A stretch of 64,000 bases of DNA from positions 1 through 64,000 of the IMG/VR virus record IMGVR_UViG_3300027749_002876; one strand, 5' to 3'. This document shows positions 5,630-15,967 of this stretch, one piece after another. A program made the translations under genes and the position numbers. How positions within the stretch are numbered: the first letter of the stretch is position 1; each line of letters opens with the position of its first letter. The notes beneath the pieces were generated by a model. The model saw nothing but the letters and a program-made list of their open reading frames with translations, was not told the DNA's origin and made no database searches.

Positions 5630-6592
5630 ATGGCAACAAAGAAAACAACTCCAAAAGCAACGACAAAACCTGTAAAACAATCTACAGAACCAAAAACTGT
5701 TCCAGTAGAAAAGGTTTTAGAAATTGCTGACCAAGCCGCTCAAGCTACGCAAGAGCAACCAAAAGAACAAGCACCACAACCAGGTCAAGTTCAAGTCAAT
5801 GTAGATTTTCTACGAACAACCAAAGTACACATAGCAATGCCATGTTATGGTGGTATGTTAACTGAATCAACATTTATGTCATTTATCAAATGGGCTAATA
5901 CAGCCCGTCAACTTGGCATTGATTGGACATTAGAAACAATGGTTAATGAATCATTGATTAGCCGAGCACGTAATACACTAACTGCTAAGTTCTTAGACAT
6001 GCCAGACGCAACACACTTGTTTTTTGTTGATGCTGATATTGGATGGGAACCCTGGCATCTATTAGTTCTATTGAACCGTGACGTAGATGTTTGTGCAGGA
6101 TTATATCCAATGAAGACAATGCCAATCAAGTGGGTAGTTAATGGATTTGAAGGTGCGGAAGAAGGACCAGATGGTTTCCAAGAAGTATCTAAAGCCGGTA
6201 CAGGTTTCCTGTTAATGAAGAAACATGTGTTTGATAAACTCAAATCACATCCAGCTGTTAAGCAGTATAAAAATGACATTGGTCTAGATCCAAAATACGA
6301 CCAACACTTGAAAACATATTTTGACACAGCAGTTCGTCAGAATCGTTACTATTCAGAAGACTGGACATTCTGTGAAAACTGGCGTGATTTAGGTGGTAAG
6401 ATTTGGGTTGACAAACGCATTCTATTGCGTCACAGTGGTAGTTATGTTTTCTGTATGGAAAATCAACAACACTTGATGAGCACAATCGGACCTATGTTTG
6501 TGGCAGAGGAACAAGCAAAGGCAGCGGCTGCTCAGGTTGCGGCACAAGTTGTCCCGGATGCAACCGGAAACGTTACATTAAGCATAACTTAA
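5630..6592 (+). CDS. GT-A fold glycosyltransferase-like protein
   Basis: IAMPCYGG, ESLISRARN, FVDADIGW (DxD), GTGFLL and SEDW motifs. Confidence 0.75.
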   Translation: MATKKTTPKATTKPVKQSTEPKTVPVEKVLEIADQAAQATQEQPKEQAPQPGQVQVNVDFLRTTKVHIAMPCYGGMLTESTFMSFIKWANTARQLGIDWTLETMVNESLISRARNTLTAKFLDMPDATHLFFVDADIGWEPWHLLVLLNRDVDVCAGLYPMKTMPIKWVVNGFEGAEEGPDGFQEVSKAGTGFLLMKKHVFDKLKSHPAVKQYKNDIGLDPKYDQHLKTYFDTAVRQNRYYSEDWTFCENWRDLGGKIWVDKRILLRHSGSYVFCMENQQHLMSTIGPMFVAEEQAKAAAAQVAAQVVPDATGNVTLSIT

Positions 6593-6596
6593 AATT

Positions 6597-6617
6597 AGCC
6601 CCGAAAGGGGCTTTTTT
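6597..6617 (+). terminator. intrinsic terminator
   Basis: AGCCCC-GAAA-GGGGCT followed by a T run. Confidence 0.9.
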
Positions 6618-6654
6618 AATGACTATACTAAATACACTAAAGGGAAATAACAAT

Positions 6655-6747
6655 ATGTCATGGTTTAGACACAGGCCCCCAAAGTATCCACCACACAAAG
6701 AACCCGTTAAAGACCCTATTCCTCAAAACAATAAGCCTACTAAGTAA
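6655..6747 (+). CDS. 30-aa Pro/Lys-rich micropeptide (MSWFRHRPPKYPPHKEPVKDPIPQNNKPTK)
   Basis: own TAAATA upstream, AAGGGA SD-like site, fills the intergenic gap. Confidence 0.55.
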   Translation: MSWFRHRPPKYPPHKEPVKDPIPQNNKPTK

Positions 6748-6764
6748 GTATTGATAAATACTTG

Positions 6765-8807
6765 ATGAACTTAAAAGAGCTTGATTCCTTCAAAATATCT
6801 GACGCCGTCACTTTCCATGACAAGCTTAACCCTGCGTTGTGGGCAGGAAATAAATTGCGTCCTGAAGTTAAAAATCAACTAGAAGAAATAGCAAAAGACT
6901 TCCTAGAAGAAATGGGTATCAATGATTTAGATGTTAGAGATATTACTATCTCTGGGTCTAACGCCGCATACAGTTATACAAAACACAGTGACTTGGATTT
7001 ACATCTCTTAGTCAATATAAATGATTTACCTAATAATGATATATACCGTGAATTCTTTGACGCAAAGAAATCATTATACAACGATAACCATGATATAACT
7101 ATTCATGGGGTTCCCGTAGAGTTATATATACAAGATGCCGCACAACCATCAGTGTCGTTAGGAGAATACAGTTTACAAAATGATAAGTGGTTGCGTATTC
7201 CTACAAAGCGTAGAGCTAACTTTGACCAATCAGCTACAAGATTGAAGTATGAAAAATTACTTGATATTGTAGAAAGAGCATTAGACTCAAAGAACTTAAC
7301 TAAAATTCAAAAAGTATTAAAGAAGATTAAGCAATATCGTCAAGCCGGGTTAGATAAAGGTGGCGAGTTTGGTCCTGAGAATTTAGCATATAAAGCATTG
7401 CGTAGTCAGGGGTATATTACAAAATTACACGATTTAAAAAACAAGTTGCATAGTGAGGTATTAACCATTGAAACTATGTATCAAAACATTGATGAAACCT
7501 TTGACCAACCTTATAAACTTAAATGGGAAAAAAGTGATTACGGTGACGTTGATGCCTATGCTAAAATGGATGATGGTAATTATCTAAGTATTATGTTCAA
7601 CAAAGGATATAATCAAGATAAGGAAGAAGCATGGAGTGTTGAGTTCTACAGAAACAACAGCCAAGAAGTTACCGGTGAGGGTGATGCACAACGTGTATTT
7701 GCTACTGTATTAAGTGCTATTCAAACATTCATTAAAAAATACAAGCCCAACAAAGTAATCTTTTCAGCTAGTAAAGAAGTTGAAGATGGACAAAACTCAG
7801 AAAGTAGAGCAAGACTATATGATAGTTTAGTTCAGCGTTATGCTAGAGCATGGGGATTTAGAGCATTTCGTGCTGATACTGGTAATAAAGTTATATACGA
7901 ATTAAGTAGAAAGCAACCGGTAGATGAAGATATCAGCCGTAGAGGATTCTTAAAAGGCATGGGCGCGGCAGCGGTAACAGGTAGTGCTAAGGCTGGTCAA
8001 TATCAATCTTCTACTGAAATAAGTCCAGAGCAGATGCAACAAATTTGGAAGCCAAGAAAAGGTGAGTTAGAAACTAGATGCTATGCTATATTAAAATCAT
8101 TTGCTAATAGTATAGCCGAATCGCATCCTGATTGGGTTAAAGTAATTCAAAAAATAAAAGTAAACACTACTTTAGGTGATAAAGTATTTCGTCAAGGAAA
8201 TGCCGCAAATTCTAGAGTATCATCTAGGGTAGTAAATGGTAAACCGATAGGTGTACAAGCCGGTCAAATTGGTATCGAAACAACTGTATTTTGGGATGCT
8301 CCTAATGATACGCTTGCTTTTATTTTAGGTCATGAGTGTGGACATATAATTATGAATCATGGGTTTTCTTTGGCATCTGATGCTAGAAATAATGAACAAG
8401 AAGCAGATATTATTGGAGCCTCTCTTGCTAAAAAAATAGGTTATGACAGGGCTAATTTCTTTAATTTTTTATTCAATGCTAAAGCTGAACAATTAAAAAA
8501 TGGATCACCCAATGATCCTCATTTAGAACCAGTTGATAGAGTAAAGTTTTTGAAAAAGAATGCTGATTTTGAATTATCACATAACACTATACAATATATT
8601 GATTCACTTGCTCAACAACTAAAGCAAGGCTTAGCAGAAGCAAGTGGCTATATCCCTAGTGAAAAAGAAAAAAACGATCCACGTTTTAAGACAGCATTAA
8701 CAGTAGATGTAGGACCATATAGCATCAAAAAGAACGCAAAAGCATTTAGCTGGCTTACATCAAGGGCCGGCATTCCACCAACAGCAAGCCCAAATGGTAA
8801 GGTATGA
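6765..8807 (+). CDS. modular polyprotein: Pol-beta-type nucleotidyltransferase + unknown domain + internal Tat signal and M48-like HExxH peptidase + short tail module
   Basis: GSN...SDLDLH...ELY; SRRGFLK at 7935-7955; HECGH at 8331-8345, EQEAD; start moved to the ATG 4 nt after TAAATA. Confidence 0.75.
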   Translation: MNLKELDSFKISDAVTFHDKLNPALWAGNKLRPEVKNQLEEIAKDFLEEMGINDLDVRDITISGSNAAYSYTKHSDLDLHLLVNINDLPNNDIYREFFDAKKSLYNDNHDITIHGVPVELYIQDAAQPSVSLGEYSLQNDKWLRIPTKRRANFDQSATRLKYEKLLDIVERALDSKNLTKIQKVLKKIKQYRQAGLDKGGEFGPENLAYKALRSQGYITKLHDLKNKLHSEVLTIETMYQNIDETFDQPYKLKWEKSDYGDVDAYAKMDDGNYLSIMFNKGYNQDKEEAWSVEFYRNNSQEVTGEGDAQRVFATVLSAIQTFIKKYKPNKVIFSASKEVEDGQNSESRARLYDSLVQRYARAWGFRAFRADTGNKVIYELSRKQPVDEDISRRGFLKGMGAAAVTGSAKAGQYQSSTEISPEQMQQIWKPRKGELETRCYAILKSFANSIAESHPDWVKVIQKIKVNTTLGDKVFRQGNAANSRVSSRVVNGKPIGVQAGQIGIETTVFWDAPNDTLAFILGHECGHIIMNHGFSLASDARNNEQEADIIGASLAKKIGYDRANFFNFLFNAKAEQLKNGSPNDPHLEPVDRVKFLKKNADFELSHNTIQYIDSLAQQLKQGLAEASGYIPSEKEKNDPRFKTALTVDVGPYSIKKNAKAFSWLTSRAGIPPTASPNGKV

Positions 8808-10006
8808 ACGATACTATTTGTAAATATGTATTCAATAGTATCACCATATCAAACAGCGGAACAGTAGACCCTTGTTGTGCACCAAATGGCCCGCATACTA
8901 AAGTATACCATGATAAAATAAAAAATCCTTTAGTTATACATGATGACTTTAATGAGGTATTGAACAACACCCAAATAGTTAATCTTAGAAAATCAATGGT
9001 TGCCGGAGAAAAAAATTCACTATGCGATACATGTTGGCAGAGTGAAAGAATTAATGGTGAGAGTGAGAGAACTTTAGGAAATACAAATTTACGAAATTCT
9101 GATGTATATAACAAAATAATTGATTTTTCAAATATATTTCATATTAACTTATTTTTAGGAAATAAATGTAATTTAGCATGTAGAATGTGTAGTCCTTGGT
9201 GCAGTTCATTAATAGCAAAACAAACTGACATTATTTACCAACGACCACCTACACCAATTATTCAATTTAATGATGATACTCAACAAAGAATCATTGAATT
9301 TATAGACAATAGTGAAAACTTAGAAAAAATTCATATGTATGGTGGTGAACCATTAATAAATGATTTCTATGATTTAATTTGCTCACATTTAATAGCTAAT
9401 GGAAGAGCCTCAAAAATCACATTGGATCTTTCAACTAATCTGCAAGTTGATTTAGAAAGAAAAAATGAATTACATCGTCACTTTAAGAATGTACACATTG
9501 CAGTAAGTGTAGACGGTGAGGGGGATACATATGAGTACATCAGATGGCCCGGTAATTGGAATAAAATACAAAATAACTTAAAAATATTAAGTAATACTAG
9601 GAACGATTTCCATGTCTCATCAGTAGTACAAAATTTAAATATTGATAATCTGTCAAATTTGATGGTATATTTAAGCACCATTGAAAATTTTAAATATCAA
9701 AATAGTACATACCGCAAAGTAACTAGTCACACCAATATAAATGATATTAAAATTATACCAACATGGGTTATAGAGCGTGAAATAGATCGTTTAAAAGCAT
9801 TAAATCAAAACATGAATTATACTATACATGCTTTAGTTAAGATGCTAGAAGCCGAAGTTGAACCATCACGTAACTTAGCATACGAAGAAGTTGCTACTTT
9901 CTTCAAACAACAGAAAGATTGGGATTCTCTTAGAAATCAAAATCTTTTTAAAACAAAGCCTCATTTTTTAGAGTTGGCCAAGCAATTTAACATCGAACCC
10001 TGGTAA
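8804..10006 (+). CDS. radical SAM protein with N-terminal SPASM/twitch-like Cys cluster
   Basis: CNLACRMC, GGEP, N-terminal C...CC...CxxC. Confidence 0.85.
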   Translation: MNDTICKYVFNSITISNSGTVDPCCAPNGPHTKVYHDKIKNPLVIHDDFNEVLNNTQIVNLRKSMVAGEKNSLCDTCWQSERINGESERTLGNTNLRNSDVYNKIIDFSNIFHINLFLGNKCNLACRMCSPWCSSLIAKQTDIIYQRPPTPIIQFNDDTQQRIIEFIDNSENLEKIHMYGGEPLINDFYDLICSHLIANGRASKITLDLSTNLQVDLERKNELHRHFKNVHIAVSVDGEGDTYEYIRWPGNWNKIQNNLKILSNTRNDFHVSSVVQNLNIDNLSNLMVYLSTIENFKYQNSTYRKVTSHTNINDIKIIPTWVIEREIDRLKALNQNMNYTIHALVKMLEAEVEPSRNLAYEEVATFFKQQKDWDSLRNQNLFKTKPHFLELAKQFNIEPW

Positions 10007-10057: not shown

Positions 10058-10855
10058 ATGAAAATCAATCAAATCGTACAAGAAACTACTACATCGGGAT
10101 CCGTTGCCCCAGTAGAGCATAGTTTTGTCAAAATGCAAACTCGCAGTCCTAGTGTCTATGGAAATACAAAAGCAGGATCACTATTCAAAGGTAAAAAGAC
10201 TAGTAAGCCTTTTGCTAACAGCATCAATGAGGGAGCAATGAACCAACTTTCAATGGACTTGAAAGGTGGAGTTGATGGATTATCTGACGAAGAATTTCAA
10301 AAGAAATATAAGATGACTAAGCAAGAAGCTCGCAAAGAGTTGACCGCTAATAGAAAAGACAACAAGAAGCCTGAAAAAGTTAACGAAGCTGACTTACAAG
10401 AAGATGATATCATAGTAGTTCCTGGTTATGGCCGCACGAGAAAAACTGGATTTACAAAGCATGGTCAAAGTCGTGTTGACCATGAAGTTGAAATGGCACG
10501 TAGTGATGTACTAGCTACAATGAAGAATGCCAGAGTAATCTACGAACTATTAAAAAATAAGTCAGAAGAAGAAGGATTAGAAGGCTGGGTACAAGAAAAA
10601 CTTATCAAAGCAAACGATTATCTAAACGCAGTAAAAGAATACTACGATGAAAAATTAATGCAACGAGAAGGCAAGATTGACTTTGCTAAAAAGATACAAA
10701 AAAACGTAGACAAGAGTAACAAGGCAGTAGTAAAGACTAGTAAAGAAGTTGGCTCAAGAGTTGCTGATATTGGTGCAGGTGGCAAAGAATATAATGTCAA
10801 AACTGACAAAGCATGGGATGATGCACACAAAGCTAAAGAAAGTAAAACAAAATGA
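10058..10855 (+). CDS. modular putative head-internal protein
   Basis: MKINQIVQE N-terminus; INE/VNE/LQE junctions; TAAATA upstream; start refined from 10019. Confidence 0.65.
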   Translation: MKINQIVQETTTSGSVAPVEHSFVKMQTRSPSVYGNTKAGSLFKGKKTSKPFANSINEGAMNQLSMDLKGGVDGLSDEEFQKKYKMTKQEARKELTANRKDNKKPEKVNEADLQEDDIIVVPGYGRTRKTGFTKHGQSRVDHEVEMARSDVLATMKNARVIYELLKNKSEEEGLEGWVQEKLIKANDYLNAVKEYYDEKLMQREGKIDFAKKIQKNVDKSNKAVVKTSKEVGSRVADIGAGGKEYNVKTDKAWDDAHKAKESKTK

Positions 10856-13800
10856 GTAGCATTTTAAAAGGTTTACAACTAAACGAATTATCTAATAAAA
10901 AATTAGGTGACTACAAAACAGCCGCAGGTGCTGATGCTACTGCCGCTGATAAAGAAGGTAACTATAAGCGTGGCGACAAGCGTATGAGTGGTATTATCAA
11001 AGCAACTAAGAAACAGTTTGCTAATGATGAAAGAAAAAAAGATGTGACAGAAACAGGCATTCCATTTCGTGGAGTGGGCGGCGCATTCAATCGCGGTGAT
11101 GATGAGCGACATGATTTAGATGTACCAAAACAAGTAAGACCTCAAGTTTGGGGCTTAAAGATCAATGGCAAAGTATGGAGCAAAGGTGGAAAATCAGTTA
11201 CATTCAATAGTAAAGACGCTGCCTTGAATATAAGAAATTCTATATTAAAGAATCGTCCTGATTTAGAAATTGGTTTAATAACTAAGGGCGGACAACAAGG
11301 TATGGCGGAAGCCACTGGTGATAAACCTTTTGACAATATGATGAAGAACATATCAAAAGGTACTAATAAACAAAAAACCTTAGACCGCAAGGAACAGCAA
11401 AAACAAACTCAACAACGAGCACGTGATGCTTTTGACAATATGTTTGGTGGTGGCAATCCTGCAGACAAATTAAAAATTAGAGAGCAAGGTGTGGCGGAAG
11501 GCTCAACTAACAGTAAATCAATAATTACTGAAACACGCACATACAAGTTATGGGAAAGTGCTGGTAAGAAGTTATATGAAGCACAACTAACAGCCGATCA
11601 AATTAATCAAATTTTTCAACAAGTAGAACAGGGTGCAACAGCGGCTGGCGGTAATCGCACTATGCTTGGCAGAGGCAAAGATGCTACTGCCGCTATAAGT
11701 AAAGCCTGGGAAGAGTTAAAAACTAAAGTACAAAATTCAGGACCTATTAAAGGTGTTGACGCTATGTATGACAAGGCTGCTGAACAATTAAAACAAGCAA
11801 CTGGTGGCGATCAAGGTGTCATGCAGTATGTTCAGAAGTATCGTGATTTTGCTAAAAAACATCCAATTGCACAGAGTTTAATTTATTCAGCATTGATTGC
11901 GGCTGCTGGTATTTCAGGTGCAGGTATTGGTGGTGCAGCCGCATTAGGTCTATTCAAACTAGTAGACAAACTATTGCAAGGCGAAAAGTTCAGTAGTGCC
12001 GCATACGCCGGTGCTAAAACTGGTGGCATGGCTTATGCCGCTGGCCAGATTGGTCAAGCGTTAAAAGGTACGCCTCAACAAGAATTACCCGGAGCACAAG
12101 GAGCACCTGGTCAATCTGAACTAGATCAAATCTATATGAATCGTGCTCAAGGGATGCAAGGCTCGGGTTATACGCAAACTGCAACTGGTCAAACAGGTGA
12201 CTTTGGACAACCAACATATAATATTATACCAGATGGTGGTGGTAGTTCGTATGACCAAGCATTCAAACAAGGTCTTGCAAAGTTTGCTGTCAACCCTAGT
12301 AACCCAAGCGCAAACGATATAATGCGAGCCAAAGACTATGCAGGAAAAGTAGCTTCTGGTATGCTTAAGCCTGTTAAGGAATCAGTAGAACTAACTGAAA
12401 GTCAAATCTTCTTACTGATCGGTAAGATAGTTGAACGTCACCGCAAACTTGATGAAGGGATCATGGACACCATCAAAGGCGCCGCAGGTAAGGCAGTTGA
12501 CTGGGCCAAGACCAAAGGCACTAACTTAACAACTAAAGTTACTGCTGACAAACTATTACAAGCATGGAAGAAAGCAGGTAGCCCAACTGACAGCTTAGAC
12601 ATTGCTAGTATTGTTCAACGAGCTGGCGTGCCAACAGCTACTATTAAACAAGTGTTTACTAACATGAAAATACCAGTGCCAGGTCAACCAGCAGTGGCAG
12701 CAACACCAGGTCAACCAGCAGTGGCAGCAACACCAGGTGCTAAACCAGCAGTGGCAGCAACACCAGGTGCTAAACCAGCAGTGGCAGCAACACCAGGTGC
12801 TAAACCAATTCAGACAACTACACCAGCTATAGTATCAGCACCGGCGGCAGCACCTGCAACCAAAATGGCAGTTCCTGCTCAAAAAACAACTATACCTCAA
12901 GTAGCACCTGTGGCTAAAGCGGCCGGAGCTACAGCACCTCAGGGGTTTAATGCTAGTAATGTAATGAAGATGCCTGGTATGGAAAAGTACGCTAAACCAG
13001 CAGTTGCAAAACCTGCGAATTTCAGCGGTGGCCCAACTGGTTACTCTAGTATGAATACTACATTTAAACAACCAGCAGTAAAACCAGCAATGGCAGCAAC
13101 ACCAGGTGCTAAACCAGCAGTGGCAGCAACACCTGTTGCACGTGTAGCAGAGGAATGGAGTCAAAAATACAAAAGCAGTATCAACTGTAGCCACCCCAAA
13201 GGCTTCTCACAAAAAGCTCACTGTGCTGGCAAGAAAAAGCATAATGAAAGTATTGAGATGGAAATGGTCTGTGAGGATTGCGGAATGTGTCAAACACACG
13301 GAGATCATTCACATGACAACTTAGAAGAAGCCTGTTGGAAAGGTTATCACAAAGAGGGTAACAAAAAGATGTTTGGAAAACAATATCCAGACTGTAGAAA
13401 GAATACAAAGGAAGGTGTGGCGAAGGGCCTATCAGAAATGGACAAATCACAAACTCCGCCAGGACGAGACGGTCACGTAAGTCATGGCACATACGGTTCG
13501 AGAGACAAGAAAGATCCAGATTCTGGTAAGAAGCAATACTACGGCAAAATGGAACGCCCTGAAAAAACAACCAAAACGGCATCGGATATTCTTAACAAAG
13601 CATTTAATAAAGGTGTAGCGGAAGAACAACATAGTTGCCCACATTGCGGTGGCGAGATGGTCAGTGAAGAACTAATGAACGAAAAGAAAGATGCTTGCTA
13701 CTACAAAGTCAAGAGCCGTTATAGTGTATGGCCTAGTGCTTACGCTAGTGGTGCATTAGTCAAGTGTCGTAAAAAAGGCGCAAGCAACTGGGGCAACGGC

Positions 13801-14514
13801 GGCAAGAAGAATGAGAGTTCTATTTTAGAAGGTATTGAACAAGCAGATGAAAGTTTACATGATTGGTTCAATAAAGAAAAATGGGTTCGCATGGATACTA
13901 AAGGAAAGATTAAAGGTCCATGTGCAAGAGAACCAGGAGAAGGTAAACCAAAATGTTTGCCACAAGCAAAAGCGCATAGCCTAGGTAAAAAAGGTCGTGC
14001 AAGTGCCGCACAACGCAAACGCAGAGAAGATCCTAATCCAGACCGGCATGGTTCAGCTATAAATGTCAACACAAAGAAAAAATCTAACGAAAATATAGGC
14101 GAGGGTTGGAGAGAAAAACTAGGCGCAGCCGCATTAGCCGGTTCTATGGCATTAGGCGCAGCCGGTGCACATGCTAGAGTTACCCCTGATGGACAAGGTG
14201 GCTTTACCGGTGGATTAAAACCCACAGCAACCGTGACAGCACCAGATAATACTCCATCTGCTACCGCACCTACTGCTTCATCTGACACATCAGATCCTTT
14301 TAAAGGTTTAGTCCGTGCTGATAGTGCCGATAGACAAGCAAAGACTATAACTGTTGACGGAAAAGAGTATGGACTTGTTGAAATATCCCCAACTGATATT
14401 AGACCACGTGGTGGACAACGAATCGTTGTTCCTCAAGCAGTATTAGGAGAACGAGGTATAGGAAACTATACAGGTATTCTAGTAGGTGATAGAGTATTTG
14501 TTATAAGTAAGTAA
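10852..14514 (+). CDS. 1220-aa modular polyprotein, putative head-internal/ejected cargo
   Basis: many short basic or Cys-containing modules separated by GVAE/LEE/MNE/LDE-type sites; hydrophobic segment; internal signal-like peptide. Confidence 0.7.
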   Translation: MSSILKGLQLNELSNKKLGDYKTAAGADATAADKEGNYKRGDKRMSGIIKATKKQFANDERKKDVTETGIPFRGVGGAFNRGDDERHDLDVPKQVRPQVWGLKINGKVWSKGGKSVTFNSKDAALNIRNSILKNRPDLEIGLITKGGQQGMAEATGDKPFDNMMKNISKGTNKQKTLDRKEQQKQTQQRARDAFDNMFGGGNPADKLKIREQGVAEGSTNSKSIITETRTYKLWESAGKKLYEAQLTADQINQIFQQVEQGATAAGGNRTMLGRGKDATAAISKAWEELKTKVQNSGPIKGVDAMYDKAAEQLKQATGGDQGVMQYVQKYRDFAKKHPIAQSLIYSALIAAAGISGAGIGGAAALGLFKLVDKLLQGEKFSSAAYAGAKTGGMAYAAGQIGQALKGTPQQELPGAQGAPGQSELDQIYMNRAQGMQGSGYTQTATGQTGDFGQPTYNIIPDGGGSSYDQAFKQGLAKFAVNPSNPSANDIMRAKDYAGKVASGMLKPVKESVELTESQIFLLIGKIVERHRKLDEGIMDTIKGAAGKAVDWAKTKGTNLTTKVTADKLLQAWKKAGSPTDSLDIASIVQRAGVPTATIKQVFTNMKIPVPGQPAVAATPGQPAVAATPGAKPAVAATPGAKPAVAATPGAKPIQTTTPAIVSAPAAAPATKMAVPAQKTTIPQVAPVAKAAGATAPQGFNASNVMKMPGMEKYAKPAVAKPANFSGGPTGYSSMNTTFKQPAVKPAMAATPGAKPAVAATPVARVAEEWSQKYKSSINCSHPKGFSQKAHCAGKKKHNESIEMEMVCEDCGMCQTHGDHSHDNLEEACWKGYHKEGNKKMFGKQYPDCRKNTKEGVAKGLSEMDKSQTPPGRDGHVSHGTYGSRDKKDPDSGKKQYYGKMERPEKTTKTASDILNKAFNKGVAEEQHSCPHCGGEMVSEELMNEKKDACYYKVKSRYSVWPSAYASGALVKCRKKGASNWGNGGKKNESSILEGIEQADESLHDWFNKEKWVRMDTKGKIKGPCAREPGEGKPKCLPQAKAHSLGKKGRASAAQRKRREDPNPDRHGSAINVNTKKKSNENIGEGWREKLGAAALAGSMALGAAGAHARVTPDGQGGFTGGLKPTATVTAPDNTPSATAPTASSDTSDPFKGLVRADSADRQAKTITVDGKEYGLVEISPTDIRPRGGQRIVVPQAVLGERGIGNYTGILVGDRVFVISK
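12679..12807 (+). repeat. in-frame tandem repeat, 27/30-nt units encoding PG(Q/AK)PAVAAT; further copies at 13081-13134
   Basis: ccaggtcaaccagcagtggcagcaaca x2 then ccaggtgctaaaccagcagtggcagcaaca x2.5. Confidence 0.95.
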
Positions 14515-14526
14515 TAAGGAATTTAA

Positions 14527-14967
14527 ATGTTATCGGATAACTTAAAAGTACTTCTAGCAAGTACACAGGCGTTTGCTATTAAAACACAAAACTTTCATTG
14601 GAATGTTGAAGGTAGTAACTTCCCACAATATCACGACTTCTTCAATACATTGTACAAAGACGTAAATGAAACCATTGATCCTATTGCTGAATATGTCAGA
14701 GTACTAGGTGCTTATACTCCCGGTAGCTTAACACGTTATGCTGAACTAAGTATCATTCAAGACCAAACTAAAGTGCCAAGAGCAGAACTCATGTTTATGG
14801 AGTTACTACAAGATTGCGAAACACTGGGGCAACTTGTTGTTGCTATGTTTGATGAAGCAACGACTGAACGTCAACAAGGTATTGCTAACTACATGGCTGA
14901 ATTACAAGACTTGTATGGCAAGAAAGCATGGTTCATTCGTGCAACATTAAAGAGAGAGCGTGAGTAA
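14527..14967 (+). CDS. dps: Dps/ferritin-like DNA-protection protein
   Basis: KTQNFHWNVEGSNFPQYHDFF and D.IAE ferroxidase signature. Confidence 0.9.
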   Translation: MLSDNLKVLLASTQAFAIKTQNFHWNVEGSNFPQYHDFFNTLYKDVNETIDPIAEYVRVLGAYTPGSLTRYAELSIIQDQTKVPRAELMFMELLQDCETLGQLVVAMFDEATTERQQGIANYMAELQDLYGKKAWFIRATLKRERE

Positions 14968-15158
14968 TGAAGGCAAAGGAAATATATAAGGGTTTCAAAA
15001 CTTATTCTGCTAAGATATTAGTGAAGAACCCTCACTATTCCGTTCATATGGATGCTATCGTAAACGCCAAAGACGTGGCGCAAGCAAGACAACTTATCAA
15101 ACTACAATACAATGTAGATGATGGCAGAATTGGTACTATTAAAGAAATAAAACAATGA
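14967..15158 (+). CDS. hypothetical protein
   Basis: 63 aa, coupled by TAATG to dps. Confidence 0.7.
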   Translation: MKAKEIYKGFKTYSAKILVKNPHYSVHMDAIVNAKDVAQARQLIKLQYNVDDGRIGTIKEIKQ

Positions 15159-15967
15159 AAAAAATTTTAACAATGATAGTAGCAATACTATCAGCAAATG
15201 CCTTTGCTTGGGAACAACGTCAACCACTACCATTACAACAATGTCAAGTACATAGTCCTTATGGTTTCCCACAAACTATTGATGTAGCACCTATCTGCCG
15301 TCAAGCATACTTAGTAGGCTACGATGCGTCAGCTAAACTACCAAAGTTTGTGACGTATGAGCTATTACCACAAAATGCATTAGGATGTGTAGCAAGAACA
15401 AATGCTTTTGTAGCTGACCAATCAGTACCAAATGGTGCTAGACCAGATGACTATGCTGGTACAGGCTATGACAAGGGACATATGAGTCCAGACGGTGACC
15501 TATCATGGGATACTCAAGTGGAGTTTGAAAGTTTTTTAATGACCAACATGAGTCCACAAGCTGGTTCATTAAATCGTGGAATATGGAAATTACTAGAAAC
15601 TAGTGTACGTGGTTGGGCAGTTCAGCACAATCAAAGTTACATTGTTTATGTAGGTGGAGTATATAATGCACAAGACAAGAAAATCGGCAACGGCGTCGTT
15701 GTTCCTCATGGTTTTTACAAGATTGTTATCAATAATCAAACTAAAGAAATAGCAGGATGGCTATTCCCTCATACTGCCCCTTATCCTAACTTGGGTAATG
15801 ACTTAACTAAGTTTCGTGTTACAGTAGCACAAATTCAGCAACAAGCTGGTGTACAATATGCGTTCCCAAAAAATGCTGTTGAATTGCAACCCGGCAAAGA
15901 GTGGAGTGTGGATTACGGTGCATTAACTAATGCTAAAAGAACTAAATGTAGTAAAAATTTAGAATAA
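15155..15967 (+). CDS. DNA/RNA non-specific endonuclease (NucA/EndoG family) with signal peptide
   Basis: YDKGHM, TNMSPQ, LNRGIW motifs; MKKILTMIVAILSANAFA signal. Confidence 0.9.
   Translation: MKKILTMIVAILSANAFAWEQRQPLPLQQCQVHSPYGFPQTIDVAPICRQAYLVGYDASAKLPKFVTYELLPQNALGCVARTNAFVADQSVPNGARPDDYAGTGYDKGHMSPDGDLSWDTQVEFESFLMTNMSPQAGSLNRGIWKLLETSVRGWAVQHNQSYIVYVGGVYNAQDKKIGNGVVVPHGFYKIVINNQTKEIAGWLFPHTAPYPNLGNDLTKFRVTVAQIQQQAGVQYAFPKNAVELQPGKEWSVDYGALTNAKRTKCSKNLE

Follow-up and report, generated by a model that had tools for sequence, protein, structure and literature searches.

A signal-peptide-like cassette behind a predicted prohead-protease site in a multi-module protein of a freshwater giant phage

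In the first 64 kb of the 524,565-bp IMG/VR virus record IMGVR_UViG_3300027749_002876 (labeled G000; these 64 kb are called the window), the last module of a 1220-residue open reading frame (ORF), P0001, carries a 24-residue segment that resembles a bacterial signal peptide and directly follows a predicted prohead-protease site. Our reading of P0001 is that of a precursor polyprotein from which capsid-internal or ejected proteins would derive. We propose, with a probability of about 0.5, that P0001 and its relatives are capsid-packaged pro-proteins with Sec- or Tat-type (twin-arginine) signals, which the head protease would expose and which would come into use once the proteins have been ejected. 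Judged by its recurrence and by the selection acting on its peptide, the cassette is more than a chance feature; packaging, cleavage, ejection, export, and a periplasmic target are steps that we infer from sequence. An earlier reading of the same DNA (the original prediction) had taken the cassette for an export signal, a view that is partly supported here, as its sequence-testable parts hold up.

The cassette and its recurrence

P0001 spans positions 10852..14514 on the forward strand, where all window features described below also lie, as a stop-free frame of 1220 codons. Near its end, the predicted T4-type prohead-protease site I-G-E (P3 to P1; 14095..14103, residues 1082-1084) is followed by the signal-like cassette GWREKLGAAALAGSMALGAAGAHA (14104..14175, residues 1085-1108). 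This segment has the n-h-c layout of a signal peptide, with an n-region GWREK (14104-14118, net charge +1), an h-region LGAAALAGSMALGAAG (14119-14166), and a c-region AHA (14167-14175) at positions -3 to -1 before R1109; its uncharged run, LGAAALAGSMALGAAGAHA, comprises 19 residues. The layout given in the original prediction, namely a basic n-region, an Ala/Leu h-region, and A-H-A behind an xxE site, is accurate to the base. All rule-based features of a Sec signal peptide cleaved by signal peptidase I are present except the N-terminal location, for 1084 of the 1220 residues precede the cassette, and a cut at I-G-E would be needed to bring it to the N-terminus. P0001 has no RR pair and no match to the Tat models PF10518 or TIGR01409. 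On the summed Hessa scale, with a sum that is not position-weighted, the cassette scores a free energy of +5.1 kcal/mol (family minimum +3.4) and is less hydrophobic than the transmembrane helices of this genome, whose segments range from -0.2 to +3.7.

Directly 3' of the cassette, RVTPDG forms the predicted mature N-terminus and opens a Thr/Ala/Pro-rich linker, beginning with RVTPDGQGGFTGGLKPTAT (14176..14307, residues 1109-1152), which leads into a beta-rich C-terminal domain of about 70 residues (14308..14511). In an AlphaFold2 model built from an alignment of 50 sequences, neither the cassette nor the linker takes on a defined structure; both have a predicted local distance difference test score (pLDDT) below 50, and the cassette does not pack against the folded domain. 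The model places six strands at residues 1149-1220 with a pLDDT of 72-83, in agreement with the small beta-rich domain that had been anticipated behind the linker.

To characterize the distribution of this design, the last module was used as a HMMER query against 1.84 billion representatives, which yielded 132 matching proteins; all family counts given here refer to homologous, non-independent sequences. Most matches cover just the first 60 residues (cassette and linker) and are internal in proteins of approximately 100 to 1650 residues, after which the C-terminal sequences differ. The original prediction had called for a survey of homologous modules for a signal retained behind E sites, and across 129 such relatives the position before the cassette (P1) is Glu in 114, P3 is Leu, Val, Ile, or Met in 111, P1' is Gly in 104, and P2' is Trp in 109. 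The [LIVM]-x-E motif is kept behind differing upstream modules, as in NQLDE, ENIDE, QGVAE, TDLTE, and IALNE. A related counterpart of P0001 in the same record, called at 1173 residues within a 1178-residue open frame, reads ENVDE, GWKQKLGAAALTGAMALGTGAAHG, and RVT across the same junctions.

Adding the window's own copy to those of the 129 representative metagenomic proteins gives 130 cassettes, which are 20-27 residues long (median 24). Position -3 is Ala in 128 of the 130, position -2 is Asn, His, Gln, or Ser in 125, and position -1 is Ala, Ser, or Gly in every one, while the net charge of the n-region is at least +1 in 124. Ala (44%), Gly (22%), and Leu (14.5%) dominate the uncharged run. 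The cassette was found in 61 IMG/VR contigs, several of them 286-364 kb long, and near-complete genomes carry one or two copies. Near-identical DNA to the window is present in freshwater and lake metagenomes, and the family-B DNA polymerase (PolB) of the record shares 43-48% identity with those of giant myoviruses, among them Phosso, XaC1, Vibrio 2.275.O, and RaK2.

Among 19 distinct cassette DNAs, codon positions 1, 2, and 3 differ from the window at rates of 0.17, 0.12, and 0.43, respectively. Changes at third positions are therefore about three times as frequent as at first and second positions, which points to selection on the peptide, and a DNA-level element was rejected on the basis of this pattern. 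More than 100 protein clusters share the design, which speaks against a one-off accident and agrees with the recurring feature that the original prediction had suggested.

Three further candidates were tried and rejected. A separate gene with its own start was discarded, given that no in-frame ATG, GTG, or TTG is located just upstream of the cassette and that the relatives have Glu there and never Met. An assembly artefact was dismissed on finding the same junction in independent contigs and runs, including a 739-base contig over 13890-14628 that is identical in two public freshwater runs. Finally, a Spy-like match of the last module (E = 0.025) reflects signal-peptide resemblance only and was not used.

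Forms of the beta domain and internal Tat signals

The beta domain was found in three arrangements among the 103 proteins of our own protein set that match its profile. In the first, represented by 82 of the 103 (a proportion biased by the presence of the cassette in the search query), the Sec-like cassette precedes the domain. In the second, other relatives carry a twin-arginine signal in the place of the cassette, before the same beta domain. For four of these (P0102, P0112, P0121, and P0123), the TIGR01409 model (cut-off 16.7) gives 21.4-25.1 bits; their signals are internal with [VL]-[DE]-E directly before them, and a MAFFT alignment places the relatives' Tat signals on the cassette. In the third, comprising at least eight relatives, there is no hydrophobic segment at all, and [LI]-x-E directly abuts RVT or RVS. 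With a slash marking the junction, examples include NVSE/RVTIGPDGQ, MKTLREYIDIIE/RVTF, and MKSSDLMRQYIDLISE/RVTI. The cassette thus has edges that coincide with the predicted protease cut on its left and the predicted signal-peptidase cut on its right, which delimits it as a discrete 24-residue insert. We regard these boundaries, as read from the aligned relatives, as the strongest single argument for a removable targeting peptide.

The fold of the beta domain produced no convincing match in Foldseek searches against PDB (best E-value 0.4) or in a wide VIA-align search (best Z 3.2). In the ESM Atlas, a shape search gave template-modeling scores below 0.5 and a feature search returned blank. 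A Pfam scan of 73 post-cassette regions detected no meaningful family. A second common cargo after the cassette, a short conserved domain with the consensus GFSKEYLQK.ADP...GR.MISVEKAQELL (in P0016, P0124, and P0087, among others), likewise belongs to no Pfam family.

An internal Tat signal, which the original prediction had named as a precedent, does exist in the neighboring 681-residue ORF P0055 (6762-8807), where V-D-E is followed by the twin-arginine signal DISRRGFLKGMGAAAVTGSAKA and then G (7920..7994). This signal exceeds the cut-offs of both curated models, with 24.5 bits against Pfam TAT_signal (PF10518; cut-off 22.7) in the genome search, compared with 19.5 in a whole-protein scan, and 17.2 bits against TIGR01409 (cut-off 16.7). 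The claim that the cassette follows the same design as this case stands with respect to its place behind an E site and its alignment with the relatives' Tat signals; it does not extend to the Tat motif, as the cassette lacks the RR pair. An M48-type zinc peptidase lies downstream of the P0055 signal, with HECGH at 8331-8345.

From its N-terminus, P0055 consists of a phrog_36119 match, a DUF6934-like part, the Tat signal, and the M48-type peptidase, and its true start may be the ATG at 6765 instead of the TTG at 6762. About 150 bases upstream of this gene, a terminator-like hairpin with a T-run (gccccgaaaggggcttttttaa) is located in 6590-6760, and a 30-codon ORF beginning MSWFRHRPPKYPP separates the two.

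Elsewhere in the record, a 398-residue protein (G000 514599-515795, reverse strand; locus L070 200-1396) begins with the T4-leader-like MRATEFINKE and carries at residue 189 an internal RR-containing hydrophobic segment, DDISRRGFALGSLGAATVGSMIG, followed by a GH19 domain (41.1 bits). According to their domain matches, the M48 and GH19 cargoes behind these internal RR signals belong to envelope-acting enzyme families, GH19 being of the chitinase/lysozyme, peptidoglycan-hydrolase type.

Proposed route and competing explanations

According to the route that we propose, P0001 would be a pro-protein comparable to the T4 internal proteins or to ejection proteins, grown into a polyprotein. It would enter the prohead, where the T4-type (S77) prohead protease of the phage would cut after [LIVM]-x-E motifs, and the last of these cuts, after I-G-E1084, would strip off the upstream chain together with the acidic junction residues. 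A 136-residue fragment would be left, with the Sec-type signal (GWREK, LGAAALAGSMALGAAG, and AHA) as its new N-terminus. The capsid would store this fragment and eject it together with the DNA; in the newly infected cell, the host Sec machinery would then export it, and signal peptidase I would trim it between AHA and R1109, setting the linker and beta domain free in the periplasm. The neighboring 681-residue protein would follow the same route with its Tat signal and M48 zinc protease.

Several observations suggest a link between the cassette and head proteolysis. The T4 protease gp21 cuts after L/I-X-E (PMC9026906), a published specificity that the I-G-E of P0001 matches, and the first 10 residues of T4 IPIII constitute a capsid targeting sequence (CTS) that gp21 removes (PMC9026906, PMC10229621). 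The N-termini of T4 IPII and IPIII read MKTYQEFIAE/A (NC_000866), and the stand-alone relatives of our module (120-150 residues) start with MKTLREYIDIIE/RV, MRAYEFLKEEELSEL/NWRK, MRINEILTEEQLDEI/DRRGFL, or MKPSDFLTE followed by the junction; a further T4-like leader among the relatives begins MRAYEFLKEE. No family member has a plain Met-initiated N-terminal cassette; in every case an acidic leader or a long chain comes first. P0001 itself contains 23 [LIVM]-x-E motifs, compared with 9.8 expected from composition. Its N-terminal leader MSSILKGLQLNE, which ends in L-N-E (10852..10887), is a candidate capsid-targeting or cleavage leader, and its first module (LSNDKL...) is the same module that follows MKPSDFLTE, a leader resembling the MKTYQEFIAE of T4 IPII/IPIII, in the relative P0014. 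Between modules, the internal junction NESSILEGIEQADE (13810..13851) is a copy of the leader-type motif, and in relatives such as P0002 and P0003 the motif ESSIMQGLNQLDE directly adjoins the cassette. Among the genes of the record are those for an S77 protease (G000 353668-354312, with a PF03420 match of 94.2 bits at 353734-354165), for a capsid protein of the Gp23 type (329.8 bits), and for scaffold-like proteins that contain [LIVM]-x-E motifs.

The record also includes a 1057-residue protein (G000 347475-350648, forward strand) with glycine-zipper-like segments (GLGGAGGAALGAMIGTAIFPVVGTAIGAALGGWLGS) after G-I-G-E. Its gene comes shortly before the ORF that leads into the head module, a module composed of the protease, a scaffold-like protein, and the capsid protein.

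A number of observations weigh against this route. The S77 protease is located in the second, approximately 80%-related genome of what appears to be a composite record, outside the fragment to which the window belongs. The leader MSSILKGLQLNE resembles the T4 CTS only loosely. The P0001 gene lies among replication and nucleotide-metabolism genes, outside the head module, although the T4 ip genes are likewise scattered. The T4-type late promoter TATAAATA was not found near the operon, and this motif is not enriched in the window. Arg occupies position +1 in 118 of the 130 cassettes, which is unusual where Sec export is efficient. The cassette is far more conserved than ordinary signal peptides, and such conservation could reflect a specific helix-helix or protein-binding role. 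The signal-less relatives, as far as their sequences tell, imply that the beta domain can also work without export. In the GH19 protein, Asp rather than Glu precedes the RR segment, which makes cleavage there doubtful.

The point concerning the protease depends on the structure of the record. Its last 4,089 bases (G000 520477-524565) repeat 172924-177012 at 99.6% identity, a terminal repeat by which 172924-520476 closes into a genome of about 347.5 kb. The remaining part, 1-172923, which includes the window, matches stretches of that genome in the opposite orientation at only about 77-89% identity. G000 thus looks like a composite of two related phages joined during assembly, in which case the S77 protease could come from one and the window from the other; the fragment that contains the window stops short of its own head module.

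The main rival explanation, which we nevertheless consider unlikely, is that the Ala/Gly-rich helix is not cleaved off but stays in the host inner membrane as an anchor or insertion peptide after the cut and ejection, whether as a domain similar to signal-anchor-release (SAR) segments, as part of an ejection channel, or as the tether of a membrane-bound effector. Very high conservation and a dominance of small residues, typical of helix-packing or SAR-type segments, would fit such a role, as would the trans-envelope channels built by podophage ejection proteins and the second Ala/Gly-rich hydrophobic stretch of P0001 at residues 342-368, which lacks an xxE site. Removal is favored, however, by the invariant small residues at -3 and -1 and by the signal-less relatives that start exactly at RVT. 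A passive anchor also gives no role to the true twin-arginine motifs found in the same position, and on the unweighted Hessa sum the hydrophobicity of the cassette falls below that of this genome's transmembrane helices.

The other three alternatives are less likely. One of them dispenses with the capsid: within the uncut or differently processed polyprotein, the cassette would act as a type-II signal anchor in the producing cell and release the last module to the periplasm, where it might, for instance, control lysis or exclude superinfecting phages. Polyproteins of the flavivirus type offer a precedent, as they regularly contain internal signal peptides that the signal peptidase of the host cleaves, and both the non-structural gene neighborhood and the late promoter that was not found agree with it. 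Yet it leaves unexplained the conserved [LIVM]-x-E directly upstream and the T4-CTS-like leaders, and the acidic leaders that precede the signal in the 148-residue stand-alone proteins would hinder export; we therefore consider this explanation improbable. There is only a slim chance, in our view, that the hydrophobic helix has no membrane role and instead attaches to partners inside the capsid, such as the scaffold or core, the inner wall, or other internal proteins. Such binding would account for the high conservation and for the constant association of the cassette with protease motifs and CTS-like leaders, but not for the interchange with twin-arginine signals, the AxA motif, or the envelope-type M48 and GH19 cargo. 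Least credible is an inert relic, in which a signal captured with a once-secreted domain during module shuffling now persists as a functionless linker. Extensive shuffling and the signal-less forms of the beta domain would fit such a relic. Against it speak the purifying selection that acts on the peptide, the motif positions that hardly vary across 130 proteins, and the spread of the cassette before several unrelated C-terminal domains.

If the export-signal reading is extended beyond P0001, a more general and tentative model emerges, to which we assign somewhat less than an even chance. A freshwater giant-phage lineage would load its capsid with pro-effectors whose Sec or Tat signals are masked by an upstream chain or an acidic leader. 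The prohead protease would unmask these signals, and the host machinery would export the effectors (the beta domain, the M48 protease, and possibly the GH19 hydrolase) to the periplasm within seconds, before phage gene expression.

Modules, neighboring genes, and relation to known systems

The module order of P0001 is shuffled relative to both its 1173-residue counterpart and its metagenomic relatives. At 11875-11955, the second hydrophobic Ala/Gly-rich stretch (residues 342-368, SLIYSALIAAAGISGAGIGGAAALGLF) comprises 27 uncharged residues, is neither preceded by an xxE site nor followed by AxA, and may form a hairpin or be membrane-active. Tandem repeats rich in Pro and Ala (units of the PGAKPAVAAT type) occupy approximately 160 residues in the middle of the polyprotein (12679-13155), followed by Cys-rich modules (13156-13809) with a sub-threshold DUF5872-like match and phrog_727. 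These Cys-rich modules share 43-64% identity with hypothetical proteins of Synechococcus and Prochlorococcus myophages, and their contig depth in the freshwater runs reaches up to 10 times that of the flanks, which indicates that many co-occurring phages carry them. They are the only part of P0001 with cyanophage matches; against 50,697 records of cultured phages, neither a megablast search with the P0001 gene nor a tblastn search with its last module returned a match. Apart from the sub-threshold DUF5872 match, which is outside the beta domain, Pfam assigned no family to the whole of P0001.

A radical-SAM/SPASM enzyme (8804-10006) is interleaved between the two multi-module genes, and a similar radical-SAM neighbor occurs near a stand-alone 148-residue homologue on the 344-kb contig L005. 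After the multi-module genes, 14527-15967 encodes a Dps/ferritin-like protein and a non-specific DNA/RNA endonuclease.

The individual parts of the proposed design (CTS, gp21 sites, and Sec and Tat signals) are known, and their combination appears to be unreported: full-text literature searches on phage ejection and internal proteins, prohead protease, signal peptides, and twin-arginine signals did not recover a description of it. Known injected phage proteins act in the cytoplasm (T4 IPI*, Alt) or build channels (podophage ejectosomes). If the reading is correct, the periplasm would be added as a new compartment to the earliest phase of infection, reached through the victim's own Sec and Tat systems, with possible roles in envelope remodeling, superinfection exclusion, or attack on periplasmic defenses. 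It would also provide an example of a bacterial signal peptide unmasked by proteolysis. As a compact, portable element of about 27 residues, the cassette with its xxE site could serve as a conditional export tag, and its conserved boundaries could be used as a pattern to find and annotate pro-proteins of this type in giant phages from metagenomes.

Close parallels are found in the internal proteins of T4, which are small and delivered together with the DNA (PMC9026906). Both IPI/IPII/IPIII and the relatives described here have a short N-terminal leader ending in L/I-x-E, and genes for an S77 protease and a capsid protein of the Gp23 type occur in the record as well. In the T4 proteins, however, the leader is not followed by a signal peptide and the site of action is the cytoplasm, whereas the unit described here is in many cases part of a polyprotein, which can reach about 1200 residues. 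In the phiKZ-like giant phages (phiKZ, 201phi2-1, SPN3US), a gp21-like protease cuts many head proteins after Glu, and these are ejected into the host (PMC9026906). Their ejection and inner-body proteins share with our family the Glu at short cleavage motifs, but cleavage in those phages takes place at S/A-x-E, descriptions of the sites mention no export signals behind them, and the lineage is different, with the PolB of our record being nearest to the RaK2/Phosso type.

Polyvalent proteins of phages and conjugative elements are delivered on invasion and are presumed to be processed into separate units (Iyer et al. 2017, PMC5512222). P0001 resembles them in its size and its many unrelated modules, and its 681-residue neighbor adds a zincin-type peptidase. 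In those proteins, processing is ascribed to an embedded metallopeptidase and not to xxE sites, and a term search of PMC5512222 found none of "signal peptide," "periplasm," or "transmembrane." Pfam, in turn, detected no hallmark domains of polyvalent proteins (e.g., MPTase, ParB) in P0001 or its counterpart.

With flavivirus-type polyproteins, P0001 shares an internal signal whose AxA-type cleavage site sets the N-terminus of the next product; their processing is co-translational in the producing eukaryotic cell, whereas a prior viral cut and a new cell are proposed here. The T6SS (type VI secretion system) effector VgrG3 reaches the periplasm from the cytosol, according to Ho et al. 2017 as cited in PMC10933484; VgrG3 has no obvious secretion signal, in contrast to the canonical-looking Sec and Tat signals of our family. 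Compared with bacterial Sec and Tat signals themselves (PF10518, TIGR01409), the n-h-c architecture is the same and relatives and the neighboring ORF pass the curated Tat models, but the P0001 cassette lacks the RR pair and is located inside the protein instead of at the initiator Met.

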